Positions 579 through 55,480 of a stretch of DNA of 64,000 bases are shown here, one piece after another (the first letter of the stretch is position 1; every line of letters begins with the position of its first letter). The stretch lies in NCBI RefSeq assembly GCF_964194025.1, contig NC_134470.1, positions 65,906,001 through 65,970,000 on the forward strand. The letters run 5' to 3'. The DNA comes from Convolutriloba macropyga. Taxonomy: Eukaryota. A program made the position numbers and the translations under genes. The notes beneath the pieces were generated by a model. It worked only from the letters and a program-made list of their open reading frames with translations. It searched no databases and had not been told where the DNA came from.

Positions 579-2164
579 GTAATAATCAGTATTTCATGAA
601 TATCTAAAGTACCTAACCAAATTAATTGGAGTTGGACGCATTTTTTTATACTGAACTACTCCTGCTTTCCTCTGCCGTTGCCTGAACCATTCTGGTAAAA
701 ATAATTAGTTAAGTTCAAAATTGGAAAAAAATAGATAGTTTTGGGCTCGTTAGGTCATCCAGAACTGGTACCCCAGAATACCTAATTTAGGCTACATATA
801 TAGGTTCGTTAGATTCCTCAGTTAGTTGAGAGTCTCCTATATACATTTAGAGGCAGTTTTATGTAGTTCAGATGCCGAATGTTAGCGAAACGTGACCCGT
901 ACCAAATGATCTCATTGTTTCATTCAATTCATCTTGAGCCGTAGTTTCATTCCTTTAAAAGCCGTTTTGTTTCAGCCGTTTTCAAGATATTTGCCAAGAA
1001 ACGCGACCAAATTTTTACATTCGTATTTGGTGCGTTTGGTTTTTCTACAAGTCTAACAAAACAGACGGATTTAGCCTCTAGAACTAGTTCCTCGATAATG
1101 GGGATTTCCCCATCTATGTTTTATAGGTCGTTTTCTGTAGTTTATATGGTCAATATTGGCTCTGTAAGTCACCTCTCGTATCTGACGAGATTGGTACGGT
1201 ACCTTAACTATCTAACATCTCTTAGAATGGACCGATTTGGATGATTTTTTGCCAAAGCGTATCAAAAGACAAACTTTGCTCCAGGTTTGGTTTTGTTTCG
1301 TTCAGCCAGTTGTGAAACATTGACAATTAAAGAAACCCCCAGTTTGACCTGCTGAAACAGGAGAACCGACATCTGCAACCTGCTACGGACCCGTAGATCT
1401 TACTGTTACCGTTGTTTCAGCAACTGGAAAGACTCAGTGTAAGCTAGTGATATTCCAAACAACATTTCGTTGTCTCAATTTGTTGAAGATGTATTAGACG
1501 TTTGGACATTTTAGTTCGTTCACGTCCTTTTTTGCGGCAATTAGCACCAACAACTCAATCGTTAACTCTTCCTGGAGGATTTTTTTTGTTTATTGAGTTA
1601 TATGCTCAGAGTGCGCACTATGCGTGCCTTCTCCGACCTAATAAAACCTAAAGAAGTACTCCTCAGAGGTTGTAAACTTGTCTCCAAGCTTGGGAAACGT
1701 CCCACTTTTTGATCGGACTTGGTCGGTTTTCACTATTAACTCAGGGTAGAAAAATATTTTCATTTTGTGGTACTGACAGCCTAGTTCAAGACAGCTCATG
1801 TATACAAGTCATATAGTGTTGTTTTCAAAAAACTTTTGAAATTGTCCGTGGGTCTTGCTTGTTGTCTTTTATGTATTATAACAAAGCGTTTTCTCAGAGT
1901 TGGTTTGCTTTGCTTCTTTCTGCTGCCGTCTCCTGTCAGGTGAGTTCTTTCCGCTTTATTGTTTGCTAGCTTGGCCAGCTTGCTTTCGGTCTGGTTTGCT
2001 CTAAACGACAGAGCAGCAGTTTTCGGATTGGTTTTTGGAACAAACCCAAAAGAACGCTTAAGCCGCAAATCCATGAAGCACACTTGCAGGATAAGTTTTT
2101 AATCCAAAGAGGGAACAAACCGCAAATTGGTGTGTTCACGTATCAGTTTTTGAAAAACATTGCC

Positions 2165-2655
2165 ATAGATGCTTTGCTAATCGGGGATTCCATCGTTGGC
2201 GGAATTGTAGCAGATGGAATGAAAACCATAGCAGTCCCAGGGGATAAAAAGGAAAACCTAACAAAAGTTATTACTGTTGAGGAACTGACTCAATTCCGTT
2301 ATTTTATTTTTGGCGAAGGAAACAACCTACAAGCCAGATCGCGCATACTCTCTGACATTGCTGAAGAGCCAGTTGCTTTATTTGCCAAACTGCAGCTACT
2401 TCTGTCAAAAGTCAGAGAGCTGCCTAATTTTCGAGTACTTGCAGTAATGAGTTTGAATCAAGTAGCCCCAGAGCCAAACATCAGAGGCCTATAGACGGCA
2501 AAATTCCTTGCCAGCGTACTTATCGGTATAATAACAGTCTTTGAAACAACCCTTAAACTCATATTCATGACCGTTTTGCAGACGACAATTTGACAGCGAC
2601 GGGATCCATTTGAGCATACGAGTGCAACAAAATTTAGCTTGTGCCATTAGAAAAA
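2165..2655 (+). pseudogene. Frameshifted SGNH/GDSL-hydrolase (retroelement ORF1 esterase-like) ORF, array copy 1 (A type)
   Basis: Block I LLIGDSIV, block II-like PG, block III-like FGEGNNL, and block V FDSDGIHLS in a shifted frame. Confidence 0.75.
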
Positions 2656-3724
2656 CAACCCTAAACCTCAAAAATTCACTATCGTATTGCAGACGATACT
2701 TTGACAACGACAGTGATACATTTGAGCAAACAAGTGAAACAAATTTTAGCTTGTGCTGTTAAAAAAGGTCAAATTGATTTTTTTAAATTCAATGCAAATC
2801 AAGAAAAACGAAACAATTTCCCATTCGTTTGACTTCTTTGATTTGCTTCTAATTTCAAAAAAAATTATGCATGATAGACACATAGCTAAATTCGTATATT
2901 TGGCAACAAATCAAACTGGACTGTCAAAGTGTATTCATTTAGTTTGAATAAGAGAGATTTTTATGCGTGTGAATTTATTGATTTAGAGAAACAATACAAA
3001 TTAAAAAATGTTGCTGTAATTTTGAAGTGCAAAAAAGTGTTAGCATTTCACCACTATTTTCAAGAAGGGTCATGTAGGAATCTCATAAACGAGTTGCACG
3101 TTTTTTGAGAGAATCTCATTATTGTAGCTAGGTATTGGGATTATGCCTTTCCCAGTTTTGAGCTGCAATTGTTGTTTTTCGAAGTTTTTCAGAGCGCCGT
3201 GAATTTTTTCCTGGCTCATGGGATTTTTGAAAACGATATTGTTGCTCAATTTCTTGCTACTGTTTGTTAAATCAGTTTTTTGACGCGTCAGATTTGAAAA
3301 TCCATCTACATTGATGAGGGTAAGTTTTATTGCTTAAACCAAATTTTTGCTGAAAAATTGATTGATGCTATAGAGGGTTTGCAATTTTTCTTTAAAAAAT
3401 GGTTATCTAAGAACCTCATGAATGAGTGGGGCAAAGATCTTTGGTTTTGGTCGTTTTACAGAAAATTCCGTACTTTTCTATTCTGGTCATGGCGATTTTA
3501 AGTAACAGCAGTTATGATCTAGAATCAACAGAGTCATTTATCAACCAGAAAACGTTCAAAACCAAAAATCCTTCAAAAGCGTCGCAACTGAGAAATATGT
3601 CCAAATCAGACAAATGCTTACGATTTATGTCTGAAAGAGATTAGCTGTAAACTGGAGTTCGAAAAAACAAAAGGTTTGCGGTCTAAGTAGATCAAAGAAA
3701 AACTGCGCCGCTTCACACATTAAA

Positions 3725-4071
3725 CTGTCAGTACCACTAACACCTGTGACTATATCCTTAAAAACAAGCCCACAGTTTTTAAGAATAAAAGTATATTTGA
3801 TTTGCGGATCTTTTTTGTGGCATTTAGTACCATCAATTCAATCGTTAATAACTCTGCCTGCAGGAATTTTTGTTTATTGAGTTACAAACTAAGAGTGCGC
3901 ATTATGCGTGCTTTCTTCTGACCTTTATAAAACCTCAAGAAGTACTCCCCAGAGATTTTAAATTTGTACACAAGCACGGGAAACGTCCCAATTTTTGACC
4001 GGACTTGGTCGGTTTTCGCTAATAACTCTGGGTAGAGGGAATATTTTCATTTTCTCTAGTGATACTGACAG
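3725..4071. mobile_element. MITE-like element inside the array unit (copies also at 7151, 10209, 13507; diverged right end at 1767-1779)
   Basis: 15-bp terminal inverted repeat ctgtcagtaccacta (3725-3739) / tagtgatactgacag (4057-4071) with 1 mismatch. Non-coding interior of ~350 bp. Confidence 0.55.
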
Positions 4072-5590
4072 CCTAGTTCAAAACAGCTCTGATGGTATGC
4101 ACGTCATATAGTGTTGTTTCCAAAAAGTTATATAAATGGTCCGTGGATCTTGCGTGTTGTCTTTGATGTTCTTTCATGTATTAAAACAAAGCTTTTTCCA
4201 GAGTTTGTTTGCTTTGCTTCTTTCTGCTGCCGTCTGCTCTCAGGAGAGTTCTTTCCGCTCTAATGCTTGCTAGCTTGGCCAGCTGTCGCTGGCTTTCGGT
4301 CTGGCTGGCTTTAAACCGCAGAGCTGCAGTTTTTGGATTCGTTTTTTGGATCATGTTCCCACATAGTGGGTATGTGTTCTTGCAAAGCAAGAATGTTCAT
4401 CGAAGCTTTGCTCTCATCTTAGATTTTTAATCTTGCACTTTTTTGTTCGCTTCCACTTTCTTTTTGGTCTCGATTGCTGTGAACCGCACCGCTTCGTTTT
4501 TCAGAGCGGTCTTCATTGCTTGCTAGCTTGGCCAGCTGTCGCTTGCTTTCGGTCTGGTTTGCCCTAAACCTCAGAGCTGCAGTTTTTGGATTCGTTTTTT
4601 GGAACATGTTCCCACATAGTGGGTATGTGTTCTTGCGAAGCAAAAATGTTCATTAAAGCCTTGCTCTCATCTTGGATTTTCAGTCTTTCGCTTTTTTGTT
4701 CGCTTACTTTTTCTTTTTGGTCTTATTTTCTCTGAACCAGACAGCTTCGGTTTTCAGAGCGGTCTTTTGGTCCGAATTCTTACGTCGACAAAGTCGCGGG
4801 GGGGAAGGAACAATAGAACCGAGATTTGTACGGTTTGGTCAAGAAGTTAAGCAATGGATACTAAAATTTAGAGATCGCAGAGTTTGGGGAAAGGGGCTTT
4901 GAGGCGAAACGTTTTTCAAGCTTACTTAGAGGCCAAAAATAGCTTCACAAGTTGGTCACACTTATCTTAATATGATGTATTTCTAATGATCTAGAACAAA
5001 GTTTTTAACAGTTATTCTGTTTCCCTTTTGGTCGGCTTTTTGATCTTTTTGAAACTGCGGACTGTTGCTTGAAAAACATATGCAAAAAAAATTTTCAAAA
5101 AATCAATCAGATCAAGTAGTTATTCGATAGTATTTGATTTTTCAGATTTCTCTTCTGCATCAAATTCAAGACGTTTGTTTACTTCAATGGAGTCAAGATT
5201 CAACACTGACAAGAAAGCAGACCGCACTGCATGCAGGTTTCTTTACTTTTTCTCTGCAAACTTACTAATTTTTTGGATAAAGTTTTGGCCACAACTTGAG
5301 TTTTAGCTTTATTTAAGACTGAAAACCGTAAACTTCGATTCAGTGGTTTAATGAACCGCTCTTGAACGGCAAATTTAGCAATGTTGAGAGCAAAAAAGCT
5401 CATGAAGAGTTTAGAGTCAAAGTGAGAAACAGTTAAAAGAGTGCACAAATTTCTTTTTTAGAATCGCAAATCCAAAAGACCACTTAAGCCACAAATCCAT
5501 GAAGCAAACTTGAGGGACAATTTTTTAATCCAAGGAGAGAACAAACCGCAAGTTGGTGTGTTCACGCATCAGTTTGAGATCAATATTGTC

Positions 5591-6081
5591 ATAGATACTT
5601 CGCTAATCGGGGATTCCATCGTTGATGGAATTGTAGCTGATGGAATGAAAACCATAGCAGTCCCAGGGGATAAAAAGGAAAACCTAACAAAAGTTATTAC
5701 TGTTGAGGAACTGACTCAATTCCGTTATTTTATTTTTGGCGAAGGAAACAACCTACAAGCCAGATCGCGCATACTCTCTGACATTGCTGAAGAGCCAGTT
5801 GCTTTATTTGCCAAACTGCAGCTACTTCTGTCAAAAGTCAGAGAGCTGCCTAATTTTCGAGTACTTGCAGTAATGAGTTTGAATCAAGTAGCCCCAGAGC
5901 CAAACATCAGAGGCCTATAGACGGCAAAATTCCTTGCCAGCGTACTTATCGGTATAATAACAGTCTTTGAAACAACCCTTAAACTCATATTCATGACCGT
6001 TTTGCAGACGACAATTTGACAGCGACGGGATCCATTTGAGCATACGAGTGCAACAAAATTTAGCTTGTGCCATTAGAAAAA
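5591..6081 (+). pseudogene. SGNH esterase relic, array copy 2 (B/A chimera)
   Basis: Same motifs. The 5' part matches copy 5 and the 3' part matches copy 1. Confidence 0.75.
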
Positions 6082-52286: not shown

Positions 52287-52809
52287 CTACACGTCGTCTA
52301 GTCGGGAGCCATTTTGCCACATGATCATTGATCGGTAGAAATCAATAACATACTGAGGATATTTATCAATCGCATCCACGCGTCTGATCAAGTCAATATT
52401 CTCGGTGCCTTCCCATTTTATGAGGAAAAAAGTTTCCCCTTTTTCGTCCATACCGCAGTCAACTATCTTCTGAGCTGGACGAGCCTCAACTTCCGTTGGT
52501 TTTCCTTTCCCCTCCTTCTAAAATAAATTGCATTAGTTCAAGTAAATAATAAAACTGAAACTGTCAACTGAATTTTGGCATATACGTCACCTTTTCCGGT
52601 TGACCAAACAAATGTTGCTGCACTCTTTCAAGCACTCTTTCAAATTCCTGAACTTTCAATGAACAAGTCAAGTTTTCTGAGAATTCCCATGATGCACCAT
52701 GCAAATCACATCCGCTCCACTTGATTAGGTATTCTATTTTACCTTCATTTCTTTCCCTCTTATCCAGTATTCGATCAACAATTTTTTGATTACCGCCAAA
52801 AACTGACAT
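52287..52809 (-). CDS. Divergent HP1/chromobox-family protein (chromodomain + chromoshadow), 149 aa; exons 52809-52591 and 52517-52287
   Basis: Chromodomain IVDRILDKR...IEYLIKWSG...SWEFSENLTC; 73-bp phase-0 GT-AG intron; chromoshadow AQKIVDCG...FFLIKWEG..IDLI...KYPQYVIDFY...MW; candidate 61-bp 5'UTR intron at 52892-52832. Confidence 0.9.
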
Positions 52810-52928
52810 TAGGCTCAACTACAATGCTAATCTGAAAAGATTGTGAAGTACGATACCTAGATTGAACATTAACTGATCAACCCAGAACTCACGCCTTTCA
52901 TTCTTCCGAATTTGAATTTCTAAAAAAA

Positions 52929-53103
52929 TTGGGATCTGTTCTGTTCCCCCCCCCCCAATATTTTTTATTACCCCCAGTTACAAATTATACGTTGTTACAT
53001 AGCACGTTACTATGTAAGAAAAGAGCACGTGCACCTGGGGGTCATAAAAGATTTATGCCCACTAGGCTGTGGGGGGGGGGGGGTAAAACAGAATAGATCC
53101 CAA
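52929..53103. mobile_element. Foldback MITE-like element
   Basis: TIR ttgggatctgttctgtt / aacagaatagatcccaa (1 mismatch), poly-C vs poly-G arms, inner cccccag/ctggggg, and a central ttacatag/ctatgtaa palindrome. Confidence 0.8.
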
Positions 53104-53253
53104 AATTGGGCAGCTTTTTACGCAAATATAGCTATTTATTGTCCAAAAAGACCAAAGATGAGTGAATATAAATGATTTAAATACAAAACGGAGTAATTTT
53201 GATTTCTGGGTTTTTCTTATTGTAGCCCAATGCGAAAGCCCCCAATTTACTAA

Positions 53254-55480
53254 ATGAAATCCATAATGCCAATCAGTTTGATTCGTAATAGAGAAAGTGA
53301 TGATCTAACAATAAAAACGGAGAAACTGATAAATAGCAGTTTGCATCAATTAATGAAACAGGAAAAGATAAGTGAAAAGATTTATCACAGGCTCAGGACA
53401 ACTGGGTCGCAACCGGTCAGGCTTTATGGACTTGCTAAAGTACATAAAAACGATACGTTGCTTCGGCCCGTTCTGTCAATACTCGGAAGCAGTTACGATA
53501 CAAAATTTCTGTCTCCCTTTTTCGAGAGGTTACCAGGTGCAAACATTGAGACCGACACGAAAGATGCCAGAGCCGCTTTAGAGGCTACCATATTAGATGA
53601 AGATAAGCTATTAGTATCTCTCGATGTTAAAAGCATGTACACCAAGGTACCGGTTGAGGAGGCAATTGAAATTGAGCATGAACTGTACTCCAGTGATGAG
53701 GTTCCCGAGATTCCGAAGTCAGCTATGAAGAGCCTTTTGAAACTAGTCGTAACCAATGTTCACTTTAAGTGGAATAAAATGTGCTATACTCAATCAGACG
53801 GTTTAGCAATGGGTGCTTCGCTGGCGGTAAATTTGGCAAATTGGTGGATAAATTTTTTTGAAAATTCCTTGCAGAACCAAATAAGGGAAGAGAGAACAAA
53901 ACTCCTGACATGCAGGGAATTTGCATTGATTGTAACCGACGCAATACTTTTAGAGGGAAAGGAGTCGAGTGCGAATCATGCAAAAGCTGCTTTCATGCAA
54001 AATGCCAAGCTATCACTGACAAGGAATATAAGAACAAGCAGGAAATTGTATGGATCTGTTCCTATTGTGCAGAAAAAGGTAGGACAGAGGACACGCAGAA
54101 ATTGAAATTATTCAAGAGGTATGTGGATGACAAAAAGTGCAATGTCAAGAGGAATCCTCTATATTACCTTGAGTATGCAAATTCTGTTCACAAAAACATA
54201 CAATTCACTCCTTAGACAAGCAACGGTAGTGGAAGCCTGGCATTCCTAGATCGAAACATAACTGTAAACGAAGATAGGAAAATTAACTGTCAACGGTATC
54301 AGAAATTGACCGATACTGGCATAATCCCACATTTCGGTAGCTGTGCACCGTTACAACATAAAAAATTATGTGATTCAAGGGACTGTGCATAGGATCTCCA
54401 ATGCAACCAATGACTGGCAATTCTTTGATGTAGTTTTAAGAGAAATCAAAGATTTGGACTGACGATCAGTATCCAACTGAGTGGTCATCGAGTATTGTTA
54501 ATGAGACGTTGGATAAAATAGTCACGAAAGAAAAAGGTTACAACCAAAACCCCCAAAAATGAAGTACATCTCAAAACAGTTTAAAGTTTTTTAAAAAATG
54601 AGCTTAAAGCGAGGTATTCAATACAGAGGAAAGATCACTCTAAATTTTGCGAGCAGACTGAAAAAATTCTGTAATGTTCAAATCATTTTTACAACGAGAA
54701 AATTAAGAACTTGCTTGCCCACACTGAAATAATCTTTTGATAAGAATCTGAAATCCCATGTGTATAAAAAGTTACATGTAATGGATGCAGTTCCATCTAT
54801 GTTGGCCAGCCGACATGTTAACACAAGAATTTCATAGCATCAAAAGAATGATTCACCAGTGGGACAACACATCGTTGAATGTTTTGGTACAGCGCATAAA
54901 ATTGAATGGGAGATTCTAGATGCATGTCGCGGGGTTGAAAAACTAATGATAACAGAAGCGATATACATAAAAAACTGAAACATCAATTAAATACGCGCGA
55001 CGAGCACCGGGAGCGCGAATTGACATTAAAGTATTAGATTAAATCAAAACAAGTTGATTTTTGAATTTCAAAAATTATTTTGGTGCACGTTAATTCGAAA
55101 TTTTGTAAGCCCCAACAAGTACACGAGAAAAACAAAAAGGAACGTTATTAAAAACTATTTTTAGGAATAGAAAACAATACACCCGGGATTTTCAAAAGAT
55201 CCGGAATAACGATTGAATTATTTTGGTTCTGTAAATTTTAACAAAATGTAAATGTGATTTTAACTGTAAATAATTTCAAAAATTTGTTGTAATTTTAACT
55301 CATTTCTTAGAATTCAATAGATAGAGTCAAATGCAAACTTATATACACTGTAAACAATTTCATTCGATTGTTAAACGTGACGATGAACGCAATGTTCGAA
55401 ATCGTTCGTTGTTTTAAATCAATTGAATCTTTAATTGTAATTCCTTCTTCTCTGCATTATTGGATTGAACTGACAAGGCT
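53254..55480 (+). mobile_element. 5'-truncated, decayed Penelope-like element (RT with internal PHD finger, C-terminal GIY-YIG, 3' pLTR-like tail)
   Basis: RLYGLAKVHK..LRPVLS, LVSLDVKSMYTKVPVEEAI, QSDGLAMG, RYVDD, SLAFLD, YQKLTDTG; GIY-YIG HVY/KVTCNGCSSIYVGQ...EAIYIKK...LN; stop at 55035-55037. Confidence 0.92.
55366..55420 (+). ncRNA. Degenerate minimal hammerhead-ribozyme-like motif
   Basis: gTGACGA-T-GAAC-gcaat-GTTC-GAAA core (55377-55401; the C of CUGA is replaced by G), flanked by imperfectly complementary ttaaac/gttttaa. Located where Penelope-like elements carry hammerheads. Confidence 0.65.

Follow-up and report, generated by a model that had tools for sequence, protein, structure and literature searches.

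A PHD finger within the reverse transcriptase of a decayed Penelope-like element

The DNA analyzed here, hereafter the window, is a stretch of 64,000 nt from Convolutriloba macropyga (assembly GCF_964194025.1, contig NC_134470.1, positions 65,906,001 to 65,970,000), and its forward strand contains, at positions 53250-55460, a dead, 5′-truncated insertion of a Penelope-like element (PLE) of the Penelope/Poseidon type (Table 1). Blastn comparisons with 30 copies of the same family covered the insertion from position 53249/53250 to 55457/55460, with 79-83% identity, and retrieved nothing else of this lineage from the window. The 5′ truncation is evident from the start of the copy, which corresponds to about residue 270-287 of the 868-aa open reading frame (ORF) of an intact sister family (see below); in tblastn comparisons with this ORF, it was retrieved as three pieces in two frames. 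An earlier note on this DNA had recognized a Penelope-like element from the sequence, and both the reverse transcriptase (RT) and the C-terminal GIY-YIG endonuclease (EN) expected of one were indeed found; the decayed RT piece reaches 22.9 bits with the Pfam family RVT_1, just under the cut-off.

Between motifs B and C of the RT there is a PHD finger. The positions that the earlier note had assigned to motif B, to the finger and to the RYVDD motif were all exact, and 302 nt (100.7 codons) separate motif B from RYVDD; this number of codons is not integral, so one frame switch is required between the two motifs. As had been noted, the finger is in the frame of YVDD and one frame switch away from the upstream RT frame. 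A second switch occurs near 54361-54390, with the tblastn pieces for query residues 455-645 (53805-54365) and 644-846 (54361-54969) lying in different frames. The zinc ligands match exactly the pattern C-x2-C-x12-C-x2-C-x4-H-x2-C-x17-C-x2-C, and the fragment 53862-54212 scores 28.6 bits with the Pfam PHD family (cut-off 24; E 1.5e-6), in agreement with the canonical C4HC3 spacing that had been claimed for it.

Table 1. Features of the PLE insertion, in positions of the window.
Feature	Position	Strand	Basis and remarks
Whole decayed PHD-bearing PLE copy	53250-55460	+	blastn against 30 family copies
RT fingers and palm, through motif B	53254-53874	+	frame 1; 69% identity to residues 287-481 of the intact ORF
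LYGLAKVHK	53422-53448	+	frame 1
Motif A, SLDVKSMYT	53617-53643	+	frame 1
Motif B, QSDGLAMG	53791-53814	+	frame 1
Switch from frame 1 to frame 0, in the linker preceding the PHD finger	53870-53880	+	three-frame translations
PHD finger, C4HC3, 49 codons	53922-54068	+	Pfam PF00628, above cut-off; frame 0
TGC (Cys) where the pocket-dividing Trp is expected	53988-53990	+	codon before FH; comparison with 34 copies
RT motif C, RYVDD	54117-54131	+	frame 0, shared with the finger
Remnants of RT motifs D/E and thumb	54132-54600	+	TAG at 54213-54215; several later stops
Remnants of GIY-YIG EN, in three frames	54700-55037	+	YVGQ 54798-54809, EAIYI 54955-54969, NTRDE 54990-55004
Family stop codon	55035-55037	+	end of the GIY-YIG remnant region
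3′ untranslated tail, homologous to the pseudo-long terminal repeat	55038-55460	+	blastn coverage ends at 55457-55460
Mutated hammerhead-core remnant, in the 3′ tail	55377-55400	+	GTGACGA in the window; CTGACGA in the intact family

Copies of the family in the Convolutriloba genome

A six-frame search of the 1.18-Gb assembly of the same genome, using the finger piece as query, revealed 3101 first-look candidates, and all 150 of those that were scored had E < 1e-35. The match to a C4HC3 finger is far beyond chance. The family of the window copy is represented thousands of times in this genome, and its nearest copies show 70-75% protein identity to that of the window. Motif B, the PHD finger and YVDD occur in a single frame in several relatives from the window family (L002, L012, L015, L017 and L025-L027), indicating that the frame switch in the window is private decay. 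Likewise, the prospect raised in the earlier note that other copies might lack the segment, or carry it out of frame, as would occur with a one-off insertion, was not borne out, because they have it and in frame.

The zinc ligands of the finger are kept in 91-100% of the cases among 34 genomic copies. The residue before FH, at the position of the pocket Trp, is W in 32 of these 34 copies and a stop codon in the other two, which agrees with the earlier suggestion that the Cys (tgc) of the window occupies a position typical of Trp; Cys appears in the window copy alone and, judging from this comparison, is a private mutation of a dead copy.

Structure and recent activity of an intact sister family

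A sister family, with 53% identity to that of the window over the finger piece, includes at least 13 copies with an open frame of 869 codons, which share 99.2-99.5% identity among themselves, and we used these natural intact copies in place of a built consensus. The uninterrupted RT-PHD-RT-GIY-YIG frame that the earlier note had proposed to look for across copies thus exists, as an ORF of 868 aa. The intact element in copy L031 spans positions 1761-6022 and is bounded by direct repeats of 433 bp (pseudo-long terminal repeats, pseudo-LTRs) that are 99.5% identical; it contains ORF1, of 219 aa, and the 868-aa ORF2 (L031:2976-5579). In the product of ORF2, the Pfam domains RVT_1 (residues 334-482), PHD (498-546; 26.8 bits, cut-off 24) and GIY-YIG (774-851; 25.6 bits, cut-off 22.6) are all over their cut-offs. 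The DKG motif upstream of the RT is invariant in alignment A1 (D253 K254 G255), and the intact GIY-YIG domain has two Cys between its GIY and YIG parts followed by two His (CCHH motif). Inspection of the sequence upstream of GIY-YIG revealed only a single Cys and no CX2-5CxxC linker. A DKG motif, a GIY-YIG domain bearing CCHH and the absence of the CX2-5CxxC linker are features of Penelope/Poseidon-type elements (PMC8557442). A pattern search located a minimal candidate hammerhead core, consisting of CTGACGA, a 4-bp helix and GAAA, in both pseudo-LTRs (L031:2112-2136 and 5937-5961); no Rfam hammerhead model matched at E ≤ 1 when two full elements were searched with permissive thresholds.

Other copies of the sister family (n = 22) are 98.9-99.5% identical to L031. 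These young copies vary in their 5′ ends and share a common 3′ end, several of them are flanked by target-site duplications of 8-18 bp, and tandem spacings are of 3.2-3.8 kb. Additionally, read depth over the element, estimated from contigs of public runs, rises approximately 50-fold from 5′ to 3′, which is the signature of 5′-truncating target-primed reverse transcription (TPRT). Together, these results are compatible with activity of the PHD-bearing lineage, finger included, until very recently.

Canonical PLEs are described as having a single ORF. ORF1 (L031:2313-2975) codes for a basic product and ends in a TGA located one codon (GGT) before the ATG of ORF2, in the same frame; its product matched no Pfam family. 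ORF1 is also present in the family of the window (L004), and a Tara Oceans contig (L040) has a homolog, with 33% identity, upstream of its PHD-bearing ORF.

PHD-bearing relatives beyond this genome

Using HMMER, we did an exhaustive search of 1.84 billion representative proteins with the segment spanning motif B, the PHD finger and motif C, which retrieved 919 matches at E ≤ 1e-3, with 128 representative clusters at E ≤ 1e-10. Many of the matches are fragments with 31-40% identity that cover motif B, the finger and YVDD. The best match of protein P0058 within the Convolutriloba genome is only 44% identical, so that it originates from another host. Intact PHD-bearing ORFs of 891 aa and 847 aa were found on short metagenome contigs from Tara Oceans plankton, and further PHD-bearing ORFs on two other ENA assemblies; all the PHD-bearing database proteins came from ENA assemblies, and none from NCBI or UniRef. 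A feature search of the ESM Atlas produced a single weak cluster (score 0.75; RVT_1 plus PHD). In most of the distant members of the clade, from other hosts, the finger ends in C-x-C (W-x-C-G-C), whereas the families from this genome end it in C-x2-C (alignments A2 and A4); the last ligand pair thus varies systematically.

Public runs labelled as two other organisms contained contig pieces with around 99% identity to the young family across the finger, with one mismatch in 355 nt and two in 376 nt when compared to L031:2200-5800. These pieces could be due to close relatives, to mislabelling or to recent horizontal spread.

Single origin and conservation of the module

The spacing between motifs B and C is bimodal, being of 28 aa in 94 relatives without the PHD finger and of 90-116 aa when it is present; the contrast of about 100 versus 30 codons advanced in the earlier note is therefore a good description of the two groups. 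A maximum likelihood tree was built with 14 PHD-bearing and 36 PHD-less proteins (a random draw of 30 with a minimum length of 700 aa, plus six that were chosen), after removing linkers and insert from every row; its rows were relatives found in the searches, one of them a protein from Clytia hemisphaerica. All 14 PHD-bearing rows grouped on one side of a branch with maximal support (Shimodaira-Hasegawa-like approximate likelihood ratio test, SH-aLRT, 100) and a stem of 0.89 substitutions per site. With the root placed at the midpoint, on a long outgroup row, this clade is nested among PHD-less PLEs, including that of C. hemisphaerica, and a single change of state suffices. We read this change as a gain because every other PLE, as well as telomerase, is devoid of the finger. 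In addition, the PHD-less protein P0242, used as query, aligns at both sides of a clean gap of 225 nt in the intact copies; the same search found no closer PHD-less relative within this genome. These results indicate that the module was gained once in a PLE subclade; it is present in every sampled member of it.

In an alignment of 20 clade members, with a mean column identity of about 35%, the eight zinc ligands are all invariant or nearly so (at least 90% kept), and this is also the case for the Val after the second Cys (V205), the Trp before the His (W220) and a second Trp preceding the last Cys pair; the pocket Trp is invariant in alignments A3 and A5. The majority residue reaches a frequency of 0.51 over the finger and of 0.74-0.82 over the RT motifs, compared to 0.23-0.26 over the two flanking linkers. 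These values suggest a folded domain that is flexibly tethered on both sides. The module reads in frame and is under purifying selection; no clade member without the finger was seen among the 14 sampled lineages, which lie as much as about 2 substitutions per site apart along the tree.

Predicted fold and comparison with Pygopus

The best match in PDB to an AlphaFold2 model of RT residues 301-720 (predicted local distance difference test, pLDDT, 75) was the telomerase reverse transcriptase (TERT) from Tribolium. The model of the finger (pLDDT 86) predicts two strands, at residues 18-20 and 27-29, as in a cross-brace PHD fold, and superimposes on the PHD finger of Pygopus (2dx8) with a template modelling score of 0.79-0.81 and a root mean square deviation of 1.0 Å; the next structural matches were MLL3 PHD6, MLL1 PHD3, BPTF and TAF3. 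Pygopus was also the best match to the sequence profile of the finger (E 1.9e-10). The closest non-PLE fingers retrieved in the protein search belong to other transposon-like proteins and, combining PHD with DUF6570, with an APE endonuclease or with SWIB, score about as well as Pygopus and do not single out a donor.

The fingers of Pygopus (PDB 2vpe, 2dx8 and 4up0) and of the PLE clade share the C-G-x-C start, the V at the base of the pocket, the W-F-H-R core and a late W-x-C. In human Pygo1 (hPygo1), the cavity for K4me2 has walls formed by W366, Y341 and D352 and a base formed by V350 and A356, while E360 and I357 serve the A1/T3 side; H3K4me2, A1 and R2 are held by Y341, D352 and E360 (PMC2726290). 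The positions W366, V350, A356 and I357 have as counterparts in the PLE fingers, respectively, the two invariant residues W and V, a small residue (S or G) and an aliphatic residue. Conversely, Pygopus has an acidic EVND loop, E360, Y341 and a net charge of -6, whereas in the clade these residues are not conserved, most fingers are net basic and a basic/aromatic R-G-Y-S stretch is found in place of the acidic loop. Pygopus also functions in the context of its BCL9/HD1 partner, which has no counterpart for the PLE finger, and many members of the clade end in CxC instead of CxxC. By alignment, these fingers retain the scaffold of a histone-tail groove, with electrostatics unlike those of a typical H3 reader. 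We do not claim membership in the subclass of PHD fingers that read methylated H3K4; the Trp expected for it is present, but the expected lip and cage residues are not conserved.

Comparison with known retroelements

The PHD-bearing elements share with the Penelope/Poseidon type the domain order, the DKG motif, a TERT-like RT, a C-terminal GIY-YIG with CCHH and no CX2-5CxxC linker, together with pseudo-LTRs, a candidate hammerhead core, 5′ truncation and target-site duplications of variable length. They differ from canonical members of this type in that motifs B and C are separated by 90-116 aa that include the finger, instead of 28 aa, in the additional 219-aa ORF upstream, and in having a hammerhead core that remains unmatched by Rfam models at E ≤ 1.

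The earlier note knew of no described PLE with such an architecture, a statement that holds only in part. Craig et al. (2021) reported PHD fingers in five families of Chlamys PLEs from Chlamydomonas, where the finger separates RT2a from RT3(A) or, within the EN, the conserved H from the conserved E (PMC8557442). Thus, a PHD finger inside a catalytic domain of the PLE polyprotein is common to both groups; however, Chlamys elements are from green algae and have an N-terminal EN without CCHH, whereas those described here are from an animal, have a C-terminal EN with CCHH and contain the finger between motifs B and C. The different insertion site and EN type indicate that the PHD finger was acquired independently. 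The survey of animal PLE clades by the same authors does not mention any insertion between RT4(B) and the next motif (PMC8557442). The part of the statement that stands concerns the site and the group, since in the searchable literature (the search did not cover Repbase or Dfam) we found no description of a PHD finger between motifs B and C of an animal PLE with a C-terminal EN.

Chromatin-type readers occur in other retroelements, and chromodomains are carried by chromoviral integrases. PHD fingers are common accessory domains of transposons, and are found in the ORF1 proteins of long interspersed nuclear elements (LINEs) of the CR1 type (PMC8557442). Both the CR1 fingers and the chromoviral chromodomains occupy a terminal position in the protein or belong to a different ORF, whereas the finger of these PLEs is within the polymerase palm.

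Possible roles of the finger

We consider it likely that the window copy represents a PLE subclade with a PHD module, gained once, in the loop that connects the helix of motif B to the hairpin of motif C, and that this module serves for docking. The module, of some 70-90 residues, consists of a Pygopus-like PHD finger with a hypervariable linker on either side. Flexibly tethered, the finger would hang outside the palm, and the RT/endonuclease ribonucleoprotein could use it for docking during TPRT. By analogy with Pygopus, MLL and BPTF, our leading guess, which we rate somewhat below an even chance, is that it would dock on the N-terminal tail of histone H3.

Histone reading is plausible, albeit unproven, and it is weakened by the data on charge and lip residues. 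The counterparts of Y341, D352 and E360 are variable or basic across the clade, and most clade fingers have a net charge of +1 to +10, compared to -6 in hPygo1; a basic finger is unusual as a reader of the very basic H3 tail. The 22 young insertions showed no obvious preference for sequence, microsatellites or GC content in an examination at the sequence level, and their flanks have 38% GC, like the window. Additionally, the location of the B-C loop outside the palm derives from general knowledge of the RT fold and not from the coordinates of the model. The broader proposal, that in a deep clade of animal PLEs a palm-embedded reader docks on a particular histone-tail state so that chromatin, and not DNA sequence, picks the start site of TPRT, is put forward as a tentative one, and we judge it rather doubtful.

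Alternatively, the finger might be functional without reading histones, and bind instead nucleic acid (the 3′ end of the template RNA or the target DNA) or a partner (the product of its own ORF1 or a host factor). The net positive charge of most clade fingers would fit this role, as would the loss of the acidic lip residues of Pygopus, the conserved basic/aromatic R-G-Y-S stretch in place of the acidic loop, and the additional ORF1, whose basic 219-aa product is conserved in a distant clade member; on the other hand, the top matches in sequence and structure (Pygopus, MLL1 PHD3, MLL3 PHD6, BPTF and TAF3) are all readers of histone tails, and both the Trp divider and the Val at the base are invariant. 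We deem this a serious alternative, although less likely than not. It is also conceivable that the finger is a tolerated passenger, inert in a permissive loop and retained because its misfolding would harm the RT, given that it is flanked by two hypervariable linkers in a surface loop and that, in the data analyzed here, other transposons, including those with Helitron-like and LINE proteins, commonly carry PHD fingers as accessory domains. Nevertheless, the finger is kept in 14 of 14 lineages of a deep clade, over paths reaching about 2 substitutions per site, no loss was seen in any member, and residues of the surface other than the ligands are conserved (the invariant W and V, the second W and R-G-Y-S), which makes a mere passenger improbable.

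The sole indication of a one-off event in the window, whether through capture of an exon, nesting of another insertion, chimeric assembly or a Cys pattern arising by chance, is that the window copy alone is frameshifted just upstream of the finger. This is contradicted by the thousands of copies, in this and other genomes, in which the finger is in frame with the RT, by the existence of intact ORFs with the finger over the Pfam cut-off, and by the clean 225-nt gap flanked by the alignment of the PHD-less P0242; we thus regard such an event as extremely improbable. A one-off insertion was ruled out by the in-frame copies across the genome, the members from other assemblies and the grouping in a single clade; likewise, a chance pattern and an exon of a host PHD gene overlapping the element were rejected, the in-frame finger being family-wide. 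Docking of the ribonucleoprotein through the finger, with the H3 tail as the first candidate ligand, remains our preferred reading.

Neighboring sequences and other loci

Two ORFs lie on the minus strand of the window at 52290-52818; one, at 52567-52818, encodes a chromo domain that scores 47.7 bits with Pfam Chromo, and the other, at 52290-52451, a chromo-shadow domain (38.7 bits), and together they look like an HP1/CBX-like gene. The 5′ end of this putative gene is around 430 bp from the truncated 5′ end of the PLE, which would be an isolated, anecdotal case of insertion close to a promoter. At 52929-53103, a short distance upstream of the PLE, there is an inverted repeat of 28 nt, with 86% complementarity and 119 nt between the arms, whose inner ends contain runs of C10-12 and G12-14. 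This stretch is common to two other loci and is therefore probably a small repeated hairpin element. Elsewhere, we found a tandem histone cluster (G000:C12:11363000-11415500), with matches to H3-like and other core histones every 3-4 kb.

Implications

The elements described here show that the B-C loop of the RT palm tolerates a whole folded domain, and this PLE subclade can be diagnosed by its B-C spacing, of 90-116 aa where PHD-less elements have 28 aa. PLEs are the closest retroelement relatives of telomerase, and their choice of target is poorly understood. If the proposed role is true, this would be, as far as is known, the first eukaryotic RT with a reader domain for targeting inside its catalytic core. 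Cloning and assays are feasible, given the many intact copies that are nearly identical, and the subclade offers a natural system to ask whether a retroelement of the non-LTR type can read chromatin at integration, in parallel to the chromodomains of chromoviruses.

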